NCBI GenBank assembly: GCA_021613535.1 | Contig: CP075493.1 | Coordinates: 12,462,001-12,526,000 of the forward strand | Reading direction: 5' to 3' | DNA from: Adineta vaga | Taxonomy: Eukaryota; Animalia; Rotifera | DNA length: 64,000 bases | Shown: positions 1,991 to 23,951 of the stretch, piece by piece | How positions within the stretch are numbered: the stretch's first letter is position 1 | How the letters are laid out: the number at the start of each line of letters is the position of its first letter | The notes under the pieces: generated by a model | Seen by the model: the letters and a program-made list of their open reading frames with translations, nothing else | What the model was told of the DNA's origin: nothing | Database searches by the model: none | Made by a program: the position numbers and the translations under genes

Positions 1991-3680
1991 ATGGATAATT
2001 CACGTTTGCGTGCAATTCTTCTCAATCTTCAAGATCGTCTTAGTAATGATGATCGAAAACGTCTTCATTTCTATCTCGGAAATGATGTTCCACGAAGAAT
2101 TCGAGATGATCCATCATTGAATGGTACCCTTAGTCTATTGGATTCACTTTTCGATCAAGATAAAATCAATGAGGAAGATTTTACTTATCTTATCAATGCT
2201 TTTCAACAAATTCGTTGTTTTGATGCAGCAAGATTATTAGAGTGTTGTTTTTTGCTTTGGATTTATTCAAATTTTCAAAGATTTTCGTTTCTATTTAGAA
2301 TGTATCAATCATAACCGAAAGAAGGGATTGAATGAATCCATGCAAAGTTTATCATTAATCATGCCACCAATACTTGATCAACTCCTTAACGATGAAGTAG
2401 TAGATGATCAACTAGCTATACAAACGTGTAAGTAAAAATTTTCTCATAATTTGATTTTTATAGTTTTCATTTTAGATCAAAATGTTTCTAATAGTAAAAC
2501 AAATTTTAATGAAAATCATCCATCATTGATTGTTGAAAATGAAAGTAATTTATTTTCGATTGAACAAAAAAGATGATTCTTTCGAAAATATTTTCTATTG
2601 TTTATTTATGTATCTATCATGATTTTAATGATTTTCTTTTTGAATTGGAATTATTTTGAAAATCGTCAATTGAAATCAAATCAAAATGGACTCTTTCAAA
2701 GGATACAAAAGAGTGAAGGAAATTTTAGTCATTTTATTAAAACAATAAAACAACTACAACACAAATTCTCAATAATGAAGAATAAAAGTAAGTGTAATGA
2801 ATTTGGTTTTCAGTCCTGTTTAATCAAAACAATTTTCTCAGTACTTTCCTGTAATGACTATGAATATTTTTTTCATTTGTTAGAATAATTAGTATGAAAT
2901 GGTCTTTTCCTCAAAGAAAGAATACCTTTTGGTATGTTTTTCAGATCTGAAATTCAAACAACATGCAATGATTGTTGCGGGAGGAAATGGAAGAGGGAAA
3001 GAATTAAACCAACTTCATACTCCTCATGGTATCTTTATTGATGAAAAGAAAACAATCTTCATTGCTGATCGAGGAAACTCACGAGTGATTCAATGGTTCG
3101 ATGATCAAAGACAAGAAATTCTCATCGAATATATTGCTTGTTCTCGTTTAACAGTGGATCAATATGGATTTCTTTATGTTTCTGATCACGTAAAGAATGA
3201 AGTGAGACGATGGAAAATTGGTGAAAAAGGAAAAGGAACATTAGTTGCAGGTAGAAATGGGAAGGAAGTCAACTTCATCAACTCAATAGTCCTACTTACA
3301 TATTTGTTGATGAAAATCAATCAATTTATATCTCAGATTCAAACAATCATCGTGTAATGAAGTGGTTGAAAGATGCGAAAGAAGGAATTGTTGTCGCTGG
3401 AGGAAATGGTCAAGGAAATAGCTTAAATCAACTGTCTTTTCCTAGAGGATTCTTTGTTAATTCATGGAATCAAATCTATGTGGCAGATTTGGATAATCGT
3501 CGAATAATGCGATGGTATGAAGGAGATCGAGCGGGTGAGATTATTGTTGGTGAAAATGGAAAACCAAATCAGACAAATGAGTTGAAAACTCCTGAGGGTT
3601 TATCGTTTGATGTAGAAGGAAATCTTTATGTTTCTGATTATTGGAGAAATAAAATTGTTCGATTTGACGTAATATTGTGA
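1991..3680 (+). pseudogene. DED - TM - coiled-coil - NHL repeat protein, disrupted
   Basis: DED-like N-terminus (LRAILLNLQDRLSNDDRKRLHFYL...LSLLDSLFDQDKI..EDFTYLINAFQQIRCFDAARLL), a hydrophobic segment near 2590-2650 and NHL repeats (VAGGNGxG, IADxxNxRV). There is a probable in-frame TGA near 2574, a frameshift near 3262 and one NHL segment deleted relative to the paralog at 5188-6077. Confidence 0.7.
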
Positions 3681-4328
3681 CTGCGATTTTCATTAAAAGA
3701 TTTTAATAAAAGCTTAACAAAAGCAACTGAATTATTTGGATTACGATTATTATGTATATGACACGTTCGATACGTATCGAAACGTTTGTTTAAGGTCAAG
3801 CAAAAAAAACTGTACATTGAAATTCTAACATGGTCGAAACTATAGCAAGAGCAATATAATTTACCATTGTTTATTGGTTCAGCTTATTCCATGTTTTATA
3901 ATTAAACTTATCATATTATTTTCTGAAATAATCCTATTCATATCTACTAGGATGACAGAAATTCTATAAGATTCTATCTCCGCTCCACTAGAGAAAGGTG
4001 CAATTATCTCCGTTTTGATATTCATCTCCTTTGTTCAATTTTTCCCATACATTTATGTATAATAACTCTCAATCCTTCCGATTCTATCGAGAGAAAAACA
4101 TGTGACATAAATTCTTCCAAACTATTTTCTTTTCTTCTTTACTCTTTGCTTAGACAAACAACATCATTAAAGCAATGTGTTTACACTTTATTTACATCAC
4201 AACTCGAAAAAAAAACTCATTTTTTTCTTCCTTTTTTGCGTTTTTCAAATCTAGAATTATTGATACAAACACACAAAATTTACTGGTCTTTTTCAAATAG
4301 CAAATTTTCTCTCAACGAGAATTGATCA

Positions 4329-6077
4329 ATGGCTGAAAGAATTATTCCTCAACGTTTTCTTGATGCTGCTGAAGAACCTGATCAGACTCTCACACCAATC
4401 AAAGGATATGAAAAAGCTCCACTTGTTTCACTCAAACAAGCAGTGGAACCAATCAAATCTTTACTTTATGATATCGATGCAATGGTTGCCACCGCATTGA
4501 GAAATTCTAAAAAACCAGCAGATGGATTGACACAAGATGAATCTGCTTCGATTCATTTATATACCATGCAATGGCCTGAACCTCATCTCAGTTTATTTAC
4601 TTTACTGAATAAAAATCTTCGATCGAAAAATCGAAATGTTTTGAAACTATGGTTTCTTTTTCTCAAACTTTTCTTTACAGCTCTATTCAAACTTCCATCG
4701 ACTAAAGGAGTTATTTATCGAGGTGTTCAAGGCAATCTTTTGAATGAATATAATGATGAAGATCATTTTTGGTGGGGAATGAGTTCATGCACTGAAAGTA
4801 TCAATATTATAGAAGGATTTCTTGGAACAAATGAAGATCGAACTATTTTCAATATTGAATGTTTAAATGGAAAATCGATTCGATCTCACTCCTATTTTCA
4901 AGATGAAAATGAGATTCTTCTTCTTCCTGGAAGTTATTTTCAAATTGTTGGAAAACTTAAAGCTGCAAAAAGAGTAACAATTATTCATTTGAGAGAAAAA
5001 ATACCAGAATATGCAACACTCGCCTCGCCTTTTGATAATTCAATGCCAACCATAGAACACTTAACAATTTCATCATCGAATGCAACAGCACTGAAATCAT
5101 CCAGTAGGTTTGTTGTTTAGACTGTGTTAAGAAGAAGAATAAGTTCCACCTAAAGAGAAGATATCTTTTTTTAATCTCTACTTTTAGAAGCAAAATTTCA
5201 ACAACATGGAAAGATTGTTGCAGGAGGAAATGGGGAAGGAACAGAATGCAATCAACTTTCTCGTCCTATTGGAATAATTATTGATGAAAACAAAACGATC
5301 TTTATTGCTGATATGAAAAATCATCGAATTATTCGATGGAAATGTAAAGAAAATAAAGGACAAACCATTGCAGGAGGGAATGGAACAGGAAACAGAATGA
5401 ATCAATTCAATGGACCAGCAGATGTGGTTGTTGATCAACGAAATAACTCACTCATCATTGCTGACAATGGAAATAGACGAGTGACGCGATGGTTTGATAA
5501 TCAGAACCAAGAAGTTCTCATTGACAGTATTGATTGTTCTCGTTTGACAATGGATCAATATGGATTTCTTTATGTTTCTGATTACGTAAAGAACGAAGTG
5601 AGACGATGGAAAATTGGTGAAAAAGGAAAAGGAACATTAGTTGCAGGTGGAAATGGGAAAGGAAATCAACACAATCAACTCTACAATCCGACTCACATCT
5701 TTGTTGATGAAAATCAATCGGTGTATATTTCCGATTGGGGAAATAATCGTGTGATGAAATGGTTGAAAGATGCGAAAGAAGGAGTCGTTGTTGCCGGAGG
5801 AAATAGCGAAATAAGTGAATTGCATCAACGGTTTAAACCTCAAGGATTATTTGTTGATCAATGGAAACAAATCTATGTAGCAGATTTTGCGAATCATCGA
5901 ATAATGCGATGGTGTGAAGGAGATCGAGAAGGTGAGATTGTTGTTGGTGGAAATGGTGAAGGAAATCAGACAAATCAATTGAATACTCCCATGGAAATAT
6001 CATTTGATATGGAAGGAAATCTTTATGTTTGTGATCAACATAATAATCGAGTCCTCCGGTTTGATTTGATATTGTAA
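4329..6077 (+). CDS. ADP-ribosyltransferase (R-S-E type) fused to NHL beta-propeller, about 554 aa
   Basis: ART motifs IYRGV, SSCT and DENEILLL. A phase-1 intron 5104-5187 (GTAGGT...TTTTAG) joins the ART in frame to an NHL-repeat exon 5188-6077. Confidence 0.85.
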
Positions 6078-7100
6078 TAGAAGCATTAATCAAAGAATTC
6101 GATTTTTGTATTTTGGAAATAATATGAAAAGTTTTTTGAACAAAATTTTGTGGAGAATTCATTAAGCAGACGTTTAATCGGATGATAATCAAATAAACAA
6201 ACGAAAGAAGTCAAGAGATATGTCGGATCGTTTCTTGTGAAATAGTGAAATAGTGAGATAGATGAAGAGAAGGAATAATTGTTATATGGCGGAATGTATC
6301 GTCCGCGAATGATATATAAATTTAAATTCTAGAACAATATCATTATTTGCATCGATGTAATGATAAGATTAAATGCACTTAATATGGTTGTTGTTTTTTA
6401 TTAACAAAGTGGATTCTAATTGTTAATTATTAATATTTTTTATATTGAACGGGCAAGTAATATTACACATAAGGTTTCGAAAAGTTCAAGCAAGAATAAT
6501 AAACTTAATTTCTATCCATTACATAAAATAAAAAGTAGTTTTCATGACAAAAAACAATGATTAAGAAAAATTATCAAACGTAAAGAAAAATTGTAGAATA
6601 TTAATTGAAGTTAACAATTTATTGATCTTGATAAGTGACCATCGTCATTGGTTCATTTGTTAATGTTCTATGCTACTAATGAAAAATCTTGAAATTACTT
6701 TATTAATACGATCATAGAGGAGAAAACATTAGAAGAGTATATATACTAATGTGTATAGTTTTAACTCATTTATCAAATCTGAGTCATCGAGTATTACTTA
6801 ACAAAAATCATATTCACTGTATTTACTGGAAGAAGTTCAGCTATTGGGACATCTTCTCATTTCTCCTTGTATTCTAGTTTTACCTTCCGTACCACGTTTA
6901 GTACTCGCTTTTCTACTTGCGGTTGTGTGAAAACAACTGAAGATCTTTGGATTTATCTTGCTGGTTACTTTACCTTTCCAATATTTGTTTTACCTATTCT
7001 CATCTATATAGAAAACAATTCAAAAATTGTCTACACAAAGCAATTACTAGACTAAAATGTCATCATTAATGATCACAGTAGTTTAGAAACTAATTCAAAG

Positions 7101-7166
7101 ATCTTGAGGGTGTGGGCGTACATACACATGATAATAGTATGTCACTTACACACCCACCGTCAAGAT
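7101..7166. repeat. Telomeric-repeat mini inverted repeat
   Basis: ATCTTGAGGGTGTGGG...CACACCCACCGTCAAGAT. Confidence 0.8.
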
Positions 7167-7843
7167 TATTACTGTATGTGTCTATTATCTAGATATTGAT
7201 GATTAACTTGAATATAAACCATTAAAACATTGTCAAAAATATGTAATTCAATATTATTATCGATGGATTGATATTGATCATTATAGTACATCTATAAGAA
7301 CTAATACAAATATTGTATTTCCAACAAATTCGAAATTTAACTTACAAATATTTTAAATTGGTCATTGAATCATACAAAGTCTAACTGACATGGATTGGAA
7401 TTAGTTAATACGATCTACCAAAAAATAATATCAATATATGTCGTTCAGTTCAACATTTTAAATAACTCGAATTGTACTCATCTTCGTTTAGTATTTTAAA
7501 GATTTTTAGATTCAGATTCAGTCTCGGACTTTTATCTACTTTGTTGATTGTTTTCAGAGAATAGATAAATGGATAGGGATACCTTTTCTTGATCTCCAGC
7601 TTATTGTCTTCACGCACATTCCCCGAATATTGTATCTCAGTTTTTTTCCATTATTCCCTTTTTATGAGTGTCTTTAAATTGATTTCAAAGCATAATATTC
7701 GAACGATGGAATTAGATTTTTCTAGGAATTACTAATCCCGATTTTAATTGGAACCTCATATATATATAAGGTAATATATATGTTCCCGATATTCAAAACC
7801 GATTGTTTATTATTTTTTTTTCTTATTAGGAATAGAAAGAAAT

Positions 7844-9299
7844 ATGATGAAAATTCTTATTTTTCTTGTATCAAATTTACTTTTGTTGACTTCTGGAATT
7901 CCAGTCAGTGTTTATATTCTTTTGTTTTTGATTCTCATGACAAAATTTATTTAGATATCTCCGCCAGTAAAGTATTCCTCATCGTCGACCAATAAGAAGA
8001 ACATTAATCCTGAGGAAATCGGTATTTATTCTATTATCTTTATTATGAACTATATGAAGGTTATATAGAGATGTGTCTGCACCCAGAATATTTTTTAAAA
8101 AATAGACAAAATTAAATGAGTTCTATCATGACGTGACAAGTTTTCGTTATCGAACTTTCTTTTGAAGAAAATTTTCATGTCTTCAAATATTTGAAAAAAA
8201 ACCGAGTGCAATTCTGAAAGAGTTAAATATCTTTGCTATAGGTAATGGTTTTGGTGATGATATGCTGTTTCCTATGCCGCTAAATTCCATGTCGTACCGT
8301 GGTGTTGCCTATAATCAAGTAAATAAGTGGCCTAATGGAATTATTCCCTACGATATATCCGCTATCACAAGTAAGTTTAGATTAAAATTCATAGTCATAA
8401 TAATTAATATCAGCATCTCATGAGGTTCATTCATATAGTTAAATTTCGATTCACTATAATCCAATACAGTAAATTTATCTCTATTTTAGATGCAACAGAT
8501 CGCTTAACGATTGAGAATGCAATGCAACATGTTATGTATGACACCGGTTCTCCTATTGCAAATTCAGTATCACGTAATCGTTGCGTTCATTTTCGACCAC
8601 GGTTAGGTAGTGATACTACTTATCTAACCATTGTGTACGGACAAGGATGCAATGCACACGTAAATAACGATCAAAGATCGACTGATATCTTTAACATGAT
8701 TATTGAATAGGTTGGCTATTACCCTAAATATGCATTAAAATTGACATTACAGAAAGATGCACAAGGAAACTGTTTTACCAATGGTGTTATCCAACATGAA
8801 CTATTGCATGTTCTTGGTGAGTAATATCTTTTAAACTGATTAACTTTTTTTTCTTTCTATGAACAGGCTTTAAACATGAACATTCACGACCTGATCGTGA
8901 TAATTATGTTCAAATCAATTATGCAAATATTGATTCACAATGGGTAATAGACAATAAGCAAGATATAGTCTATTTTCTTGATTTAAACAAAGCGAATACA
9001 TCACTTATCACACATAATCACTAATCTACTGCAATAGAATGAAAATTAAGTCTGATGTGTTTTTTTTCCTTCTATAGCATTATGCCTTCGATAAACAAGT
9101 ATGGGGTACAACAGCAGTTGATTTGAAAACTAATTATGATTATGGCTCAATTATGCACTATGGAAGAGATTATTTCTCCAAAAATGGTTTACCAACAATA
9201 GTTCCCAAACAAGACAACGTTCAAATTGGTAATCGCGAAAAACTTAGTCCTACTGATATCCTTGAAGTACGTCGATTTTACGGATGTCAAGCTTATTGA
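7844..9299 (+). CDS. Astacin-family zinc metalloprotease (M12A), about 7 exons
   Basis: Signal peptide MMKILIFLVSNLLLLTSG, KWPNGIIPY, HELLHVLG|FKHEHSRPDRD zinc motif split by an intron, SIMHY Met-turn, and C-terminal IGNREKLSPTDILEVRRFYGC. Confidence 0.92.
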
Positions 9300-10761: not shown

Positions 10762-10905
10762 GTACATTTTGTTCAAGACACTGACGTATCATGATCGAAA
10801 AAGTAGACATTTCCAAGGGTTCTCTGTAAAATATGTAAACCGTTCGATCTATACATACTAAAAGAAGCACTATATGAGTAATTGTCGAGGCTGCTGTAAT
10901 ATCAT
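10762..10905 (-). pseudogene. Inverted, truncated copy of the promoter and 5' end of the NYN gene
   Basis: Minus strand matches about 11045-11172 (GCCTCGACAATTACTCATATA shared; MSTFSIMIRQCLE vs MSTFSILTRRCLE). Confidence 0.85.
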
Positions 10906-11134
10906 ATTTCATGTGTCTCTGTAACGGTGTGATATCTAATATGTTATTATACAAACAGAAAGAAAGAAAAATATTTAAGATAAACTGACAGACAGAACGA
11001 TACATTTAATTATTTTCCATCGTTGCGCAATGACAGTGACACATGTAATATTACATCAGCCTCGACAATTACTCATATATAATGTTTTTTTAATATATAT
11101 ATAAATCTACATATTGTACAGTGAATCCTTCAAA

Positions 11135-12199
11135 ATGTCTACTTTTTCAATCCTTACACGTCGGTGTCTCGAATTGAGTGAAATTTGTCCAAAATGTAAA
11201 TGGAATTGTGATCATTACCAATCAAATGGTTTTTGCCGGTGTAGCCCATACGGTAAACGAGACTGTGATATAAGTCGAGAACATTGTTGGACAGACATCG
11301 TAATCCACATTGATATTCCGCCAAATCCTCGACTTTCTGAAGTTAACATAATTATTGATGGTGATAATTTTCCACAACGAATTATAGTTGCATTAATTCA
11401 TCATTTCATAAAGCAAGGATGTAAAACGGTTGGGATAGTTATTTCGCCATCGAAATATATTGGAATTATTAGTGGAAGTTATGGTGACCAGGTTAAATTC
11501 GAGTTTATTCGTCTTGTCGAAGATGGACATGTACTGGTTATTTCGGCAGCTAATTCAATGTATTATGATCACACGGGTGGTTGTGAAGATGCAGTTGTTT
11601 TACACATTGGGATGTATCATCGAGCCATAGTACTCTCAAATGACACATTCAAACCGAAAATTGGTGAAGAACATGAGTTTATTCCAAATACTATTCTTCA
11701 TATAGCTGAAACTAAAATTTCTGACCATGAAATCTTACTAACATTTACCACTCCATCTAATCCCACCCTATCAGGCCCTGATGTTTTAAACTATGTAATA
11801 GATAATGTTCTCGCGCAAAGCACACCAATTGATCCCATATGTACAAGTTCAAATATAGAATCTCATATTCCAGAAATTCTAAAACGACATCGAATTTATA
11901 ATCTGAATAAACATCTGGACCGATGTGATCGTGTTCTTTATGAGCATTATTCAAAATTAGAAAAATATAGTCAACAATTAAATGCGTTTACAAGACAAAT
12001 AGAGAAAGCATCAATTAATGATATGAAATTGATTGAAACATTAAAGGAAAGAAAACAACAAGTGATGGAAAATAGAGAAGAGTATAAAGACAAAATCGCA
12101 TCATTGTTAGAACAAAATATGGGATTTCGAGAAGAAATGGTTCAACAATTAACTATATTAGGTCAGTTAAAACTTTTCGAACAGGAGAAGGAGGATTGA
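11135..12199 (+). CDS. Cys/His-rich N-terminus + NYN/PIN (Zc3h12a/Regnase-like) RNase + coiled coil
   Basis: IIIDGDNF, CEDAVVLHIG and AIVLSNDTF match the DGxN / DD / SND acidic catalytic pattern. N-terminal CPKC..CDH..CRC..C..HC; C-terminal heptad-rich helix. Confidence 0.7.
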   Translation: MSTFSILTRRCLELSEICPKCKWNCDHYQSNGFCRCSPYGKRDCDISREHCWTDIVIHIDIPPNPRLSEVNIIIDGDNFPQRIIVALIHHFIKQGCKTVGIVISPSKYIGIISGSYGDQVKFEFIRLVEDGHVLVISAANSMYYDHTGGCEDAVVLHIGMYHRAIVLSNDTFKPKIGEEHEFIPNTILHIAETKISDHEILLTFTTPSNPTLSGPDVLNYVIDNVLAQSTPIDPICTSSNIESHIPEILKRHRIYNLNKHLDRCDRVLYEHYSKLEKYSQQLNAFTRQIEKASINDMKLIETLKERKQQVMENREEYKDKIASLLEQNMGFREEMVQQLTILGQLKLFEQEKED

Positions 12200-12351
12200 G
12201 ACTAATAAAAGTGGATAGAAATTTTGGCTTCATCTCGTTTCAATGAGGACTATATGAGTTTATGAAATGATCATGGATTGATTCCAAACATTAGTCTTGA
12301 ATCAAAAACTCAGATCAGCTTTCTTTCTTAAAAAAATCATCGTCTTTTTAG

Positions 12352-13130
12352 GTAACATTGATCGTTTTAAACCTGTATCCATCCGCTCCGGCCTTCCGTA
12401 TTACATCTTTGGCTCGGAAAACAGTCTCGATATTGATATTTTAGTCCTTTTGAAAGACTATCAAAAACCGTCGACATATGTTGAATGTCAAAAATTGATG
12501 AACAAGTTCATTTACGAATTTCAAGATTTACACTGTTTGGCAAGTGACAAACCTGTCAATATAAATCTTGCAGTTCTGTCAGATGGTATAATTACATGGG
12601 TATTGAAAGGCATTCCAGATGAAACCAATAACAGTGTCTTTCATACATATCATTTACATAAACAACATTATTCACTCGAAATCCAGCGACTCGTTCCTCG
12701 CGATATTGAAAAGAAAATCATTCGTGCTACACGAGCTATTCTATCTCAGCTAACAAAATCTGAACGACGACATAATGTTAAAAACGCTTTGAAAGCAAAC
12801 CAACTCTATATTCGTCTCGATGCACTTAAGCCAATTCGTTTTCAAGAGCTCGATTTTAAACAATCCGAAGAAGATTTGACTGAAATCGTCAAATTGATTG
12901 CGTTTCAACTTGGTCAGACAATGGCTTTGATAAAAGAAAACAAAGAACTATATACAAAAATACAAGTAGCAGAATATGATCCGAGATTGAGGCCGTATCT
13001 AATGAGAGAAACGGGATGTAATTTGGAAATATTGACGCAAGTTAAAAATGAATATATCGCAATGATTGAACATATGTTTGTTAAACAACCGGAATTAAGA
13101 ACACAAGCAGAAGTGCTAGTTACTGACTAA
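12352..13130 (+). CDS. Pol-beta-superfamily nucleotidyltransferase-like domain (probably exon 2 of a spliced gene)
   Basis: YYIFGSENSLDIDILV fits hGS-x-DhDh and is followed by a helical domain. No in-frame ATG lies before the motif; a TTTTAG acceptor ends at 12351. Confidence 0.65.
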
Positions 13131-13268
13131 GTACAGTGTTTCTACGCCTCGAACTCTGGCTATCACATATGTCTCCAAAAATTTTCGTATATTTTCTGTG
13201 TTTGAATCCACATGTTTATTATTCAATAATAATAAAAAAACATTAGTACAAAATGAGTCTTCAAGAAT

Positions 13269-19138: not shown

Positions 19139-20974
19139 GTGGTAATTCAGGATATGGCCTCAATGGTGGTACCTCTACAAGGTTTCCAAACAATTAATGA
19201 CCAAGCGGAATTGGATTATTGGCAAAACCAAATGAAAAATGATGAACTTTTCGTTCAATTTATGGCCGAAATCTTCCAGAAGAAACAGCTGGAAGCACAA
19301 CGTGAAAGAAGAAACAATAGTATGACTCATCCTACACTAGTACCAAACACATCATCGCCTCCGCCTCCAACTACACAAGAACCAGTGCGACAGCTACCTA
19401 GCCTCATGTACCAACCGATAATGACACCTAGCAACCAACACCAATATTATCAAGCTGTTGGATCACCGATGGTAACAAATAGCAATAAGAATAACTCAAA
19501 TATTGACATTCAATATAGTACAGGAACAGCCCGACGAGCTTTGGAAGAGGCTAGTCCAGAATATCGAACACAACAACGAGTAAAAAGACGTCGACAAGGT
19601 GAAATAACCCCAAAGACAATTCCAAGTAACATCGGACCAGAATCTGGAGCAGCAAATGGAAAAACTTATGAAGTGCTTCCTAGTCATGTCAAAAGAGCAA
19701 TGAACAACAATCTTCCATGTTTTTACATGAAATTCAGGAGCACCAATGATACAGAAGGAATTCAATCACTATCACCAATGAAGGTCGCCGAATTTATTCG
19801 GGAAACAATCTCCCAACAATCGGAGCATTCATTAGAGGATATATCCTTGTTAGTACCGGTGGCCTTGAATCGTTTCAAGATTGGAGTGAAATCGAAGAAA
19901 AGTTTTCTTTTATTATGGCAGTGCAAATGGTCCCGTCAAATGGATAATTATGAATTTGAAGTTGAACGACCACGTTCCTTACCTGATTGCTGCGCACTAG
20001 TTGTACGAAACGTCCCTGCGGACCTACCCAACGAATTTATCTACCAGGAAATCACAAAATCAATTACATCAGCAACATCGCTCACAAAAATGAATTATCA
20101 TCGACAACGAACCACAAATGATTTCAGATTTTGTGTAGCAGATGAAAATGAGTACGACGAAATAATCAAAATTGGAAGAATTGCAATTGGACACGTGCTC
20201 CTCCCGATCACCACCTTCCAATCCAGTTTGAAACTGACGTATTGCAATAGTTGCTGGAAAATTGGTCATTTTAGAGCACAATGTAAAGTAGGTCACTGTT
20301 GTCGTTTATGTTTAGAACCATGGAACCGGGATCACAAATGTGAAAAACCAACAAAATGTGCTCAATGTCATGGTGAACACCTGTCCCTCAGCATGGACTG
20401 TCCTGTAATAAGAAGTTATCGTCGAACATTGAAAGAAGAAGTAGAGAAAGCAATTGAAGAAGCAAGTGCCAATCCTCATCCTCTTCCTAGCCAAGTAAAT
20501 CGAAATAAGAACGTATGGGTAACAACTCAAGGATCAATAACACAACATTCGGAACCGCACGACGATAGCCATCTAAGTGAATTGAACAAGGAAGTTAAAT
20601 ATATACTAGATATAACTCGACGTTTGGAAAACAAACTTGACATTATCACATGGAGAATGGAAGCATCGGATAAAATGGTCGTGATCAACAAACAAGGTTT
20701 AATGGTATTAACCGACATCGTACAACAAACAATCAACGCATTAATAGGACAGAAAAAAACATCTGTCATACAAAACCTGGCAAGCCAGATTGATAAATTT
20801 AAAGAAGATTTTGTGGAAAAATTCAACAACCTCAACAACGAAAAAATCCATATCAAGACAACAACTACTCCAAACGAAAATATCAACAACAATCGAAAAA
20901 CAACAGACACTGAAGATGGTAACAACATTAATCGAAGGTCAGAAATAAACACTATGAACACTATAGATGAATAA
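19139..20974 (+). CDS. LINE ORF1 gag-like protein with zinc knuckles
   Basis: CNSCWKIGHFRAQC (CX2CX4HX4C), CRLC...HKC and CAQCHGEH...C, then a coiled coil. Overlaps ORF2 by 8 nt (ATGAATAA). The first ATG is near 19154. Confidence 0.9.
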   Translation: MVIQDMASMVVPLQGFQTINDQAELDYWQNQMKNDELFVQFMAEIFQKKQLEAQRERRNNSMTHPTLVPNTSSPPPPTTQEPVRQLPSLMYQPIMTPSNQHQYYQAVGSPMVTNSNKNNSNIDIQYSTGTARRALEEASPEYRTQQRVKRRRQGEITPKTIPSNIGPESGAANGKTYEVLPSHVKRAMNNNLPCFYMKFRSTNDTEGIQSLSPMKVAEFIRETISQQSEHSLEDISLLVPVALNRFKIGVKSKKSFLLLWQCKWSRQMDNYEFEVERPRSLPDCCALVVRNVPADLPNEFIYQEITKSITSATSLTKMNYHRQRTTNDFRFCVADENEYDEIIKIGRIAIGHVLLPITTFQSSLKLTYCNSCWKIGHFRAQCKVGHCCRLCLEPWNRDHKCEKPTKCAQCHGEHLSLSMDCPVIRSYRRTLKEEVEKAIEEASANPHPLPSQVNRNKNVWVTTQGSITQHSEPHDDSHLSELNKEVKYILDITRRLENKLDIITWRMEASDKMVVINKQGLMVLTDIVQQTINALIGQKKTSVIQNLASQIDKFKEDFVEKFNNLNNEKIHIKTTTTPNENINNNRKTTDTEDGNNINRRSEINTMNTIDE

Positions 20975-23951
20975 GAACAATAAAAAAATGTGTGTTAGCG
21001 TAGATGCTCCCACTTTCTATCCTTCCTTTCCCATTACTGATGTAAAAGGGTCCGTGGTCCAACGAGTTATTGATTGGGGCTTTCCTAGGAGCTTGGTCAA
21101 CACTATATCAGAAATTCTAGAGGAATGGTATGGAAATAATACCTTACATGGAGTTTTCGAAATATGGGAGAAGAAGAAACAGAAATTTATAAGTCAAAAA
21201 AGCCCCCTCAACATCTTATTATACAATGTAGCAGGCTGGGGAAGTAGGTCACTGGAAACGGTGGAACTAATATGCAAAACTGACAGCGCTTTCTGCATCT
21301 TAACTGAAATAGGTGAGCTATGGAATAGTTTCGCAATTCCGAATTTTAACACATTCTACAAGGAAGGAACAAATGGCAAAGGAGGAGTCATGATAGCAGT
21401 AGGAAAACACCTAAAAGTGACTCGCATAGATATAGATATTGAAAACACAGTCATAGTGGATGTAGATGGACTATCCGAACCAATAAGAGTGGTAGCTATA
21501 TACTGGCCACAGAGTCAACAACGTAAATTAGAGGAAATATCACCATTCATAATAGAGAATACTATAGTAGCGGGAGATTTCAATGGCACAGTACAGGAAT
21601 GGTGTAGCCCAACAACAGATACAAGAGGCAAACTTCTACGAAGTTGGATCGAAGAAGTAAATCTGAGATTTATCCCTGGTACAAAGAACTCTTCAAAACG
21701 CTCGGACAGACATATAGACCTTATTTTTACGAATGTAATAGATGTTAAAGCCGAAACCTTGGAATTAGGGACAAGTGACCATTGGCCCTTAGTGATGACA
21801 AGTGAACACATCGGATTCCAAATAAATGGATACTTCCCGATCGTTAACTGGAAAGCCTTCGAAGTGATGTTACAATTGCTGCAGGAATTCTGGAGGAAGG
21901 AACTAGAAAAACAAGAGGTAGATGGATGGTACTCTATGTATACCAGATTCCTAGCTGCATTAAAGAATAGAGTAACAACTTGGAAAACGGTTGAGAAGTA
22001 CCGCCCGGCTCTACCACCACATATAATTGGAATGTTAAAAAATGTTAGACAAATTAGGAATAGATACTACAGACAACGAAAATGGTTCGGAGGAATAGGA
22101 AATGAAGAGGATAGAAGACTGCTGCGAATGTTAACTAGACAAACAAATATAGAAATAAACCGATATAAGACGGAAAATTGGAGTAAATTCCTATCATCAA
22201 TACAAGAAGCACACGACCTAAGAGGTAAAGCCTTCTGGTCACATCTAGCACGAATTTACAAACCAAAAACTACACCGATATTTAAATTAGCAAAGAATAA
22301 TAAAGTTATAGCTGATCAACAAGAGATAACTAAGGAATTATATGAGTATTACAGTGAATTAGGAAAGCCAGTGAATATTAAGAAACAAGACAAAAATGGA
22401 ATAGAAATCGAAGATGAATATAAACTCATCCAAAACATACTGGAAATAGACAAACAACTCACGATAGAACCGATATCACTAATAGAGCTCAAAAAAGAAG
22501 TGAAGAAATTAAAAAACAAAGAATCAGCAGGCTACGACCTTATATCCAATTGTATGATTAAAACACTACCACCGCAATACCTCCAATGTCTCGTTAACTG
22601 CTTCAATTCATGGTTAAAGGACTGTCGATACCCAGAAGTCTAGAAACTTGCAAGGATAGTTACGCTTAGTAAGCTAAACGCAGGCATCCATCAAGCAGAC
22701 CAGACGCGACCAATTTCATTGCTACCCACGCACTCTAAACTTTTCGAAAAAATAATTTTGAACAAAATCAGATATTGGGCAGAGACTAATCATTCAGTAC
22801 CTAGAGAACCATCTGGTTTCAGACCCGGTGGTTTGCTAAGTACACGTGTACTTTCAATATACCAGGAAATTAAAAACGAACTAGCAGCTAACATGCCATG
22901 TCTGGCGTTGTGTTTCGACTTCAAAAAAGCTTACGATGCTGTATGGCACACGGGAACAATAGTAAAATTAAATAGACTAGGAATGCCTAAGGAATTGTTG
23001 AAAATAGTATTATGCTGGCTAGAGAACAGGAAGGCGTACATCTCCCTGGGAAAGAAAGATTCCACAATATTCAGGTTGGACATAGGCCTTCCGCAAGGAA
23101 GTAGCCTTAGTCCATACCTGTTTATTGTATACCATAGCGATATCGTCCACTGTGCAGGAGCTCACCCAGTGCACGTATATGCCGATGACTTATGTATCAT
23201 AATCAGAGGACCGATAACGAAGAAGCTGCAAAACACGAACGACTATTTAGGAAAAGAAGGTACGGAAATCTGTAAGAAAGTTATGGAATACGCGGAAAAA
23301 TGGAAACAGCCGCTAAATGTTAGGAAAACAGTTGGGCAGGTATTCTACTCCCAACCTGTTTGCCCGGAAATTAAAGTCCTTATCGAGAACAAAGAATTAG
23401 AACTATTGAGGTCGTTCAAATACCTAGGGTTCACTTGGACAAGCAAGCTATCATTACAACCGACAATAGATAATTGCATAGGAAAAGCAGACAGAGCCAC
23501 AGCGAAAATGAAATGGTTGAAAAAGAATAAAATCGTCTCGCTCGAAGTCCTACGTAAATGTCTTTTCATATTTACCTTCCCGCATTTAGCGTGGATCTTT
23601 CCTCTTTACCCCTTCCTTCCACAAGGACAAAAAGAAGCTCTGAATAGGAAATTCAGAGTCGGAATTCGAATAGCACACAGATGCCCCTACATCGAAGCGA
23701 AGGATCTACATACTGTAACGAAAGAGGAAAGTTTAGAATTCTATGTGAAAATGTATATCAGGAAGCAAATAACCAACGCGAATAAAACCGACCTTAGTCT
23801 ATCCCCCTTCTTCGAAGATATATTCAAATGGGATTGGATGAAGAAAAAGAAGAATGACGGAGTCGGACACTTTTTCAGAACGAGAAGAGTGAAGAAGCAA
23901 TTGGAAAGACACGAGGTGCTGCTGATAAAGTGGATAGAATTCATAGAGTAA
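20967..23951 (+). pseudogene. LINE ORF2: APE endonuclease + reverse transcriptase, one nonsense codon
   Basis: EN motifs YNVAG, LTE, AGDFN, IDLIF and SDH. RT motifs RPISLL, DFKKAYD, LPQGSSLSP, YADD and KYLG. In-frame TAG at 22641-22643 (YPEV*K, where W is expected). Confidence 0.93.

Follow-up and report, generated by a model that had tools for sequence, protein, structure and literature searches.

A spliced gene of the bdelloid rotifer Adineta vaga joins a predicted NYN nuclease to a nucleotidyltransferase-fold module shared with giant viruses and huge phages

Introduction

Can a single polypeptide both cut an RNA and extend the end that it has made? The question is raised by a locus of the bdelloid rotifer Adineta vaga, where an open reading frame (ORF) with features of an NYN nuclease is followed, on the same strand, by a second ORF with those of a small nucleotidyltransferase (NTase). 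The locus lies in a stretch of 64,000 nucleotides (nt) of contig CP075493.1 (hereafter the window; all coordinates are positions in this whole stretch). Bdelloid rotifers are known to retain foreign genes, and an earlier reading of the letters of the window (hereafter the sequence-only reading) had proposed that an intron joins the two ORFs into one chain, with a zinc finger, a Regnase-like NYN RNase, a coiled coil and an NTase of possibly bacterial or viral origin. Here we report that the locus is one transcribed, spliced gene encoding a 601-residue protein of four parts, namely an N-terminal Cys4 motif, an NYN endoribonuclease domain, a helical hairpin and a Pol-beta-fold NTase with a helical bundle, in that order. 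Its C-terminal module is one of a large family, as yet without a name, that occurs in giant viruses and huge phages. The gene model and both fold assignments are, in our judgement, very probably right.

Results

One gene with a phase-1 intron

The gene lies on the + strand, with its start ATG at 11135 and its stop TAA at 13128-13130, and is organised as follows (RNA-like contigs and the X2 contig are described below):

11135-12161, + strand: exon 1, 342 full codons and the first base of a split Gly codon; RNA-like contigs over 11185-12163
12162-12351, + strand: spliceosomal intron, 190 nt, GT..AG, phase 1; holds the read-through stop and AATAAA at 12204-12209
12352-13130, + strand: exon 2, two bases completing the Gly codon, 258 codons and TAA; RNA-like contigs over 12348-13248
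13131-13248, + strand: 3' untranslated region, with AATAAA at 13231-13236; the X2 contig ends at 13248

The phase-1 donor and acceptor pair and the stop-free 1806 nt were all found at the positions that the sequence-only reading had given. With a slash marking the cut, the donor is TATTAG/GTCAGT (first intron base 12162) and the acceptor CTTTTTAG/GT (last intron base 12351), and a Gly codon is split across the junction into G (12161) and GT (12352-12353). The exons sum to 1027 + 779 = 1806 nt, both exon frames are without a stop, and the joined frame comprises 601 codons and the TAA. Reading through the donor leads to a TGA at 12197-12199, followed by AATAAA at 12204-12209. The NTase ORF had been said to have no ATG of its own before its GS..DID motif, and indeed the exon-2 frame contains no in-frame ATG ahead of this motif, its first Met being ORF residue 68.

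Public sequencing runs were found with a 2.3-kb query, and four of them (X1, X2, X5 and X8) were aligned to it; the evidence for splicing consists of assembled contigs, from which rare forms drop out. The RNA label of X1 and X2 in the record is a guess, and both behave as RNA by their exon-only coverage. A single 1064-nt contig of X2 lies on 11993-12157 and then on 12348-13248, skipping 190 nt with GT..AG ends; four letters at the cut fit either side, and the placement is 12161/12352. In X1, a contig beginning at 12348 has a 17-nt loose end identical to 12141-12157. Neither run has a contig within 12164-12347, upstream of 11185 or past 13248. X5, from a different study, covers portions of exon 2, and X8 covers every bin, including the intron and the flanks, and so behaves as DNA. 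The joined form is absent as DNA in X8, because its contig 12059-12502 retains the intron contiguously. The junction contig of X2 thus joins both ORFs into the single chain that had been proposed, in agreement with the continuous ORF of a second bdelloid genus (see below). The X2 contig ends 12 nt past the AATAAA at 13231-13236, and this end is plausibly the poly(A) site. By contrast, the suggestion of an additional RNase-only isoform, ending via the AATAAA at 12204, drew no contig support: in the aligned runs no contig retained the intron or ended near 12204, although a minor form could escape contigs.

Two variants, differing at 4-5 sites per stretch, were seen at 11326-11467 and at 12059-12163 in both the RNA-like and the DNA runs. 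They look like alleles that are both transcribed.

Orthologues in other bdelloids

The gene is single-copy, a six-frame search of the assembly (100.8 Mb, six contigs) having returned the locus itself alone. In the searches each exon product was used separately, and the natural proteins P0002 and P0157 served as full-length queries. All word-search relatives that carry names are bdelloids. Adineta steineri has a fused model of 601 amino acids (aa) that is 86% identical to the A. vaga protein (P0002), with an intron of 252 nt at the same codon position. In Didymodactylos carnosus the fused model has 504 aa (P0008), and a single ORF (L003 3603-5243) extends without interruption from the nuclease's IIIDGDN motif through the whole NTase domain; there is no intron at the junction in this species, which has one after the Cys-rich exon instead. 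A later search added a protein of Adineta ricciae, and orthologues were found under three bdelloid genus names. Five shorter database calls (P0001 and P0003-P0006) end after the first ORF, having read through the donor and into the intron. Between A. vaga and A. steineri the first exon has a protein identity of 87% and a ratio of nonsynonymous to synonymous substitution rates (dN/dS) of 0.24, and the second exon has a dN/dS of 0.17. Judged by these ratios, both halves are under purifying selection.

The N-terminal half is probably a divergent Regnase-type nuclease

Five parts were delimited in the predicted protein:

11186-11251, + strand: Cys-rich motif, putative zinc knuckle (residues 18-39; from the conservation pattern)
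11324-11815, + strand: divergent Zc3h12a/Regnase-type NYN (PIN-like) endoribonuclease domain (residues 64-227; from fold and profile matches)
11858-12154, + strand: antiparallel two-helix coiled-coil hairpin (residues 242-340; from AlphaFold2 helices)
12393-12674, + strand: modelled Pol-beta-fold nucleotidyltransferase core (exon-2 residues 14-107; motif FGSENSLDIDILV; from AlphaFold2 and PDB matches)
12696-13103, + strand: C-terminal helical bundle, KNTase_C / AadA_C / HEPN-like (exon-2 residues 115-250)

Sequence searches with the A. vaga product alone gave little. Scans of both exon products against Pfam, NCBIfam, PHROG and PADLOC found nothing above cut-offs, the exon-1 product drawing only coiled-coil noise from Pfam and NCBIfam, and single-sequence phmmer searches of each exon against PDB gave coiled-coil or chance matches only. 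An AlphaFold2 model of the exon-1 product, built on a 12-homologue alignment, reached a mean predicted local distance difference test (pLDDT) of 83.9 and a predicted template-modelling score (pTM) of 0.81. In an exhaustive structural search of this model (VIA-align) the top match was ZC3H12C (7ndj_A; Z 10.9, root-mean-square deviation 3.7, 146/166 residues aligned), over residues 64-227. Foldseek was led by KHNYN, Regnase-1/MCPIP1, ZC3H12C and ZC3H12B, with target-normalised TM of 0.5-0.6, and a profile of the NYN family searched against PDB gave ten matches, 10/10 of them to ZC3H12A/B/C or KHNYN (best E 3.3e-4). The Regnase-like NYN nuclease of the sequence-only reading was therefore the leading match by all three routes. 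A PRORP-like role in tRNA 5' processing was also considered for this domain and rejected, PRORP ranking 45 in Foldseek, far below Regnase and KHNYN.

The active site of ZC3H12A consists of D141, D225, D226, D244 and D248 (PMC5499597). In the A. vaga family D75, N78, E151, D152, N169 and D170 are invariant (12/12 homologues), and a hidden Markov model (HMM) alignment to ZC3H12A pairs E151-D152 with the DD motif (D225, D226) and S168-N169-D170 with SND (D244); D75 is paired with D141 by its motif position (IDGDN) and the structural range, and not from a printed alignment. For the Pfam family PF11977, which has a gathering cut-off of 23 bits, the full-length homologue P0157 scores 23.4 bits, above the cut-off, and P0162 has a precomputed match; membership, as judged from these scores, is reached via relatives only and not by the A. 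vaga protein itself. Taken with the alignment, the N-terminal half is a divergent Regnase-type NYN member that probably keeps the catalytic centre. Canonical Regnase-like genes, which are intron-split, are located elsewhere in the A. vaga genome.

The Cys motif ahead of the nuclease comprises C18, C21, C25, C34 and C36, followed by SPY, and has the form C-x3-C-x8-C-x-C. C25 is invariant in the bdelloid and the virus-like homologues alike, and C21, C34, C36, S37, P38 and Y39 are nearly so; the model has a pLDDT of 72-78 here. By its pattern the motif could plausibly be a zinc knuckle, distinct from the CCCH finger of Regnase; of the zinc finger that had been predicted, the conserved Cys4 pattern stands, and support stops at that pattern. 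No CCCH finger follows the nuclease, where a short linker leads into the hairpin, and the sole Cys cluster of the protein is N-terminal and all-Cys. The coiled coil foreseen after the nuclease takes the form of a two-helix hairpin in the AlphaFold2 model (helices 242-291 and 297-340, pLDDT 86-97), and this region has many helical-hairpin structural matches, at Z 9-10.7.

The C-terminal half has a Pol-beta NTase fold with an atypical motif

The AlphaFold2 model of the exon-2 product had a pLDDT of 94.5 and a pTM of 0.89. Its best whole-domain matches in PDB were ANT(3'')(9) (7uy4_B, Z 8.3), AAD(9) (6sxj_A, Z 7.9) and HalB of the Hailong system (9dbh_A, Z 7.3), with 174-182 residues aligned and a Foldseek E of 2e-4. 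Weaker matches were to ANT(4') (Z 5.9) and the MNT antitoxin (Z 5.4), and also to DrrA, GlnE and a 'nucleotidyltransferase-like protein' from structural genomics. Sequence identity to the ANT and AAD enzymes and HalB is 10-13%. The second lobe (exon-2 residues 115-250) matches HEPN-type and LinB/ANT C-terminal bundles at Z 5-6, and shape matches in the Atlas, at TM 0.5-0.66, were to viral 'nucleotidyltransferase' clusters and to AadA_C plus NTP_transf_2 families. A profile of the C-terminal module (hereafter the C-domain) against PDB yielded one spurious fibrinogen match only. The basis of the NTase assignment is therefore the fold together with the motifs, and not homology in sequence to solved enzymes.

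Numbered along the exon-2 product, G20, S21, S24, D26, D28, N71, G86, N93, T98, R116, R124, R127, K180 and F184 are invariant in 51 homologues, and N69 (at least 90%), K85, D89, E90, N92, H102 and Q104 are nearly invariant. Conserved basic residues of the helical bundle are R116, K121, R124, R127, R139, K143 and K180. F19-G20-S21 and D26-I-D28 are, position by position, invariant or nearly so in these 51 sequences. In the model F19-G20-S21 stands at the end of strand 16-19 and D26-I-D28 at the start of strand 27-33, and the hG[GS] and [DE]x[DE] motifs of the Pol-beta superfamily are thereby found on adjacent modelled strands; the nearly invariant D89 and E90 open the helix that follows strand 68-76. 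The C-terminal half is thus modelled as a Pol-beta NTase fold with a KNTase-like second lobe and an atypical GS-x4-DxD motif. The fold and its ANT/AAD/HalB and AadA_C-type matches agree with the earlier view of a minimal Pol-beta NTase unlike the terminal uridylyltransferases of metazoans, and both folds that had been named for this protein, Regnase-type NYN (PIN-like) and Pol-beta, were recovered by structural searches. The C-terminal bundle was also considered as the seat of a HEPN RNase active site; this idea was rejected, since the C-domain family has no conserved Rx4-6H motif.

The C-domain family in giant viruses and huge phages

An exhaustive HMMER search with the A. steineri protein (P0002), among sequences clustered at 50%, returned at least 558 cluster representatives with E <= 1e-3, 396 of them with E <= 1e-10. 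Of the 150 matches listed, nearly all stand alone as proteins of about 230-260 residues and align to residues 357-599 with 33-44% identity. The 51 aligned C-domain members matched no Pfam, PADLOC or PHROG family, and none of them matched PF10127 (RlaP) at E <= 0.1. A translated search of phage genomes gave matches only in genomes of 440-636 kb, the carriers being Lak phages, Bacillus phage G (gp208), Salicola phage SCTP-2 and one uncultured phage, and matches in IMG/VR were on contigs of 85-373 kb. In BFVD the C-domain matched uncharacterised proteins of Terrestrivirus, Indivirus and Klosneuvirus, with query-normalised TM of 0.63-0.71, and one entry without a name at 0.75. Genes for ankyrin, XPG, SBDS, GMP synthase and the like are present on the contigs of those stand-alone homologues that are closest.

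Fusions of the C-domain are of several kinds. One protein of 576 aa (P0157) has NYN and NTase domains in the same order as the A. vaga protein. Its contig (69 kb, 93% coding, 31% GC, intron-less) carries genes for an aminoacyl-tRNA synthetase, kinesin, JmjC, EF1G and Tpt1 and, because of this coding density, the missing introns and the gene content, is classed as giant-virus-like. The same fusion, which the sequence-only reading had proposed to look for elsewhere, was thus found both in other bdelloids and on a giant-virus-like contig. The order is reversed in P0010, in which the NTase comes first and is followed by the Cys motif, the NYN domain and the coiled coil, on a 1951-nt contig of unassigned source. 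In P0074 and P0046 the C-domain is fused to a PNKP-type HAD phosphatase (HAD_PNKP), and in P0120 to a T4 Rnl1-type RNA ligase. In P0013 (L010 3596-5308), whose contig also has ankyrin and XPG genes, it follows an N-terminal part of 300 residues that matched nothing recognisable. Finally, on a 244-kb contig of IMG/VR (L016) a stand-alone C-domain gene at 5010-5723 directly follows five tRNA genes (3928-4515), in a neighbourhood (2372-8880) with an R2K ATP-grasp ORF upstream and, farther on, a dATP/dGTP diphosphohydrolase-like ORF and Ro60/TROVE (7165-8880).

Origin of the rotifer gene

In a quick tree the C-domains of A. vaga, A. steineri, D. carnosus and P0009 formed one clade, with a support of 98 in the Shimodaira-Hasegawa-like approximate likelihood ratio test (SH-aLRT), and the clade of same-order fusions was nested in a group that otherwise has giant-virus-like contexts. 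Outside the bdelloids, every full-length relative found came from a metagenomic contig that was either virus-like or unassigned, and among animal-named sequences all relatives are bdelloid. The junction intron is present in the Adineta copies and absent from that of D. carnosus. The most likely course of events, as reconstructed from these comparisons, would be uptake from a giant virus by an early bdelloid before the radiation of the group, followed by intron gain in the Adineta lineage. A viral origin, already raised from the letters of the window, is made plausible by the same fusion on a giant-virus-like contig and by the occurrence of the C-domain family in Klosneuvirus-type viruses and huge phages.

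Surroundings of the gene

Upstream of the gene lie an NAD:arginine ADP-ribosyltransferase (ART) ORF at 4329-5120 and NHL repeats at 2899-3357 and 5313-6077. A retroelement without long terminal repeats (non-LTR) occupies 19139-23951, with an AP-endonuclease ORF at 20967-22643, preceded by an ORF of 611 aa without a Pfam family, and a reverse transcriptase at 22719-23951.

The 5' end of the gene is part of an inverted repeat (10772-10907 / 11043-11173) whose arms pair over 66 nt at 83% and over 37 nt at 92%. Both the start codon and the first 13 codons lie within the repeat, so that a truncated mirror copy (MSTFSIMIRQCLEQ...) is present upstream on the minus strand. A contig of the DNA run X8 has an opposite-strand joint at 11004/11048. 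A matching inverted repeat is present in A. steineri (99 nt, 73%; L005 3716-3814 / 3893-3991). The structure could be either a bidirectional promoter or an old palindrome.

Discussion

What, then, would a protein of this architecture do? We put at about one half the probability that RNA is cut and that the 3' end is then modified by nucleotide addition. In such a scheme the NYN domain would make a metal-dependent cut that leaves a 3'-OH, as metal-dependent PIN-like nucleases do, and the tethered NTase would then add at least one untemplated nucleotide to the new 3' end, thereby marking or remodelling the fragment; the hairpin would probably serve oligomerisation or contact with a partner protein. 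We favour a cut followed by extension because the NYN and NTase domains occur in either order within one chain (P0157 and P0010), a classic sign of a common substrate, because the other partners of the C-domain (a 3'-phosphatase and an RNA ligase) act on RNA ends, and because there are precedents in RDE-8 with MUT-2 and in RlaP. The gene itself would have come from a giant virus into an early bdelloid, acquired its intron in the Adineta lineage and been kept by purifying selection. More specifically, and only tentatively, the protein may be a virus-derived single-chain cut-and-tail enzyme that was domesticated before the bdelloid radiation, with an NYN domain that cleaves viral, transposon or aberrant RNAs and an NTase, the founder of a new GS-x4-DxD family, that tails the 3' end for decay or small-RNA amplification, the family at large being devoted to 3'-end repair in giant viruses and huge phages. 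Cutting followed by extension does not by itself tell apart RNA defence, decay or processing as the role in the rotifer.

Several observations weigh against this interpretation. On the nuclease side, the A. vaga protein has no match to PF11977 at E <= 1, and the fifth acidic residue of Regnase, D248, aligns with P174. On the NTase side, the A. vaga protein scores 13.8 bits against the Pfam family Polbeta (PF18765), whose cut-off is 26.9, and the PDB Z-scores of 7-8 are only moderately over background. In Pol-beta NTases GS and DxD are usually 9-13 residues apart and a helix lies in the gap; here the gap has four residues (E-N-S-L) and the intervening helix is missing in the model, and strand 68-76, the expected site of the third carboxylate, has N69 and the invariant N71 in place of Asp or Glu. 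The splice junction is documented by contigs from a single study, the RNA status of the runs being a guess, and the tree on which the origin was read is an unrooted quick search that does not fix the direction, virus to rotifer or the reverse.

The most probable rival makes the protein an enzyme of repair, not of decay or defence. The nuclease could trim a damaged or precursor end, for instance of a tRNA, and the NTase could rebuild the 3' nucleotides as RlaP does, in RNA repair or maturation. Such a role would suit a family that is fused to a PNKP-type 3'-phosphatase and a T4 Rnl1-type ligase, that is carried by viruses with tRNAs and aminoacyl-tRNA synthetases of their own, that on one viral contig lies beside a five-tRNA cluster and Ro60/TROVE, and that has in RlaP a precedent encoded next to RNA ligases. 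The nuclease, however, is nearest to Regnase and KHNYN, which are enzymes of mRNA and viral-RNA decay, with the tRNA-processing PRORP only at rank 45; neither ligase nor kinase is fused to the A. vaga protein or was seen in the neighbourhood of its gene, and the tRNA/Ro60 neighbourhood is a single case. We regard repair as possible, though doubtful for the rotifer protein. Slightly less probable still is that the C-domain combines an NTase fold with other chemistry or none, as a phospho- or pyrophosphotransferase, an AMPylase or a dead RNA-binding guide. The atypical GS-x4-DxD spacing and the Asn at the expected third carboxylate would allow it, as would the presence of the adenylyltransferases DrrA and GlnE among the structural matches, and in the fusions with a PNKP phosphatase the C-domain occupies the slot that the kinase has in the domain layout of T4 Pnkp. 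Yet G20, S21, S24, D26 and D28 are invariant, and D89, E90 and N92 nearly so, at identities of 31-44%, which argues for a working site, and the best structural relatives are true nucleotidyltransferases.

The sequence-only reading had also envisaged a signal-and-cleave enzyme in the style of OAS/RNase L, and the same logic is known from CBASS (cyclic-oligonucleotide-based antiphage signalling) and HalB: a nucleotide signal made by the NTase would switch the attached RNase on or off. HalB, an NTase that synthesises oligo-dA, is one of the three best structural matches (Z 7.3; for its function see PMC13434031), and cGAS and CdnE are present low in the Foldseek list, at TM of only about 0.2. The chain, however, has no sensor domain, and Pfam, PADLOC and fold searches found no ANK, CARF, SAVED or HalA-like channel in it; the 51 family members gave no convincing PADLOC match, and the end-healing and end-sealing fusions indicate RNA ends as the substrate. 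Signalling thus seems improbable to us. Least probable of all, and by a long way, is that two separate genes, or viral contamination or misassembly, have been mistaken for one. The closest non-rotifer relatives are virus-like and many database calls end after the first ORF, as would be expected in that case, but the short calls are intron read-through, the junction contig and the continuous ORF of D. carnosus speak for one chain, the position of a spliceosomal intron is conserved in Adineta, orthologues occur under three bdelloid genus names, and the gene sits on a chromosome-scale contig with ART/NHL and non-LTR retroelement neighbours.

Neither the two folds nor the idea of coupling a nuclease to an NTase is new; the novelty lies in the single-chain architecture and in an unnamed NTase family whose motif is atypical. 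Our literature searches found no description of the gene, of an NYN-NTase fusion or of the C-domain family. With Regnase-1/ZC3H12A-D, KHNYN and N4BP1 the A. vaga protein shares the fold, together with the IDGxN, SND and acidic-Asp motifs; if D75 is counted as the partner of D141, it probably retains four of the five acidic residues. It differs from the Regnase group in falling below the Pfam model, in having a proline as the equivalent of D248, and in having a Cys4 motif before the nuclease and no CCCH finger after it; it also adds a helical hairpin and an NTase, which none of Regnase, KHNYN and N4BP1 has. In Caenorhabditis elegans the NYN protein RDE-8 is physically coupled to the NTase MUT-2/RDE-3, and the cleaved RNA receives a 3' tail (preprint 10.64898/2026.09.04.749402). 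In this CPUG complex the Zc3h12a-like RNase and the NTase are separate polypeptides on scaffold proteins, whereas the A. vaga protein is one chain. MUT-2 is an NTase of the poly(A)-polymerase/TENT type; that of A. vaga would be minimal and ANT/KNTase-like, from an unrelated and virus-rich family, and tailing, documented for the nematode system, is predicted for the rotifer one.

Among small NTases, RlaP adds one or two nucleoside monophosphates to damaged RNA 3' ends (PMC12776372). RlaP (PF10127) is likewise a small Pol-beta NTase linked to RNA ligases and end healing, as the C-domain family is through its fusions to Rnl1 and to a PNKP phosphatase; it differs in its motif spacing, in the absence of a PF10127 match from the 51 members, and in having its partners by neighbourhood and not by fusion to a nuclease. 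ANT(3'')(9)/AadA, AAD(9), ANT(4') and HalB have the same two-lobed combination of NTase core and helical bundle, but their substrates (antibiotics, or tyrosine-primed dA synthesis for HalB) are without link to the RNA-enzyme fusions of the C-domain family. The likeness to the Hailong system is a fold-level match to HalB (Z 7.3); PADLOC gave no such match, and the neighbouring ORFs in A. vaga are ART/NHL and a retroelement.

In summary, the atypical motif of the C-domain and its fusions with a PNKP phosphatase, an RNA ligase and NYN nucleases suggest that giant viruses and huge phages have an RNA-end enzyme that is as yet undescribed. If our interpretation is true, the A. vaga protein would be a natural one-chain version of the coupling of an NYN RNase to an NTase that is multi-protein in C. 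elegans, and would offer a compact system in which to see how cleavage and 3' tailing are coordinated. It would likewise be an example of an RNA enzyme with several domains that bdelloid rotifers acquired from a virus and that is now intron-bearing, expressed and conserved among them.

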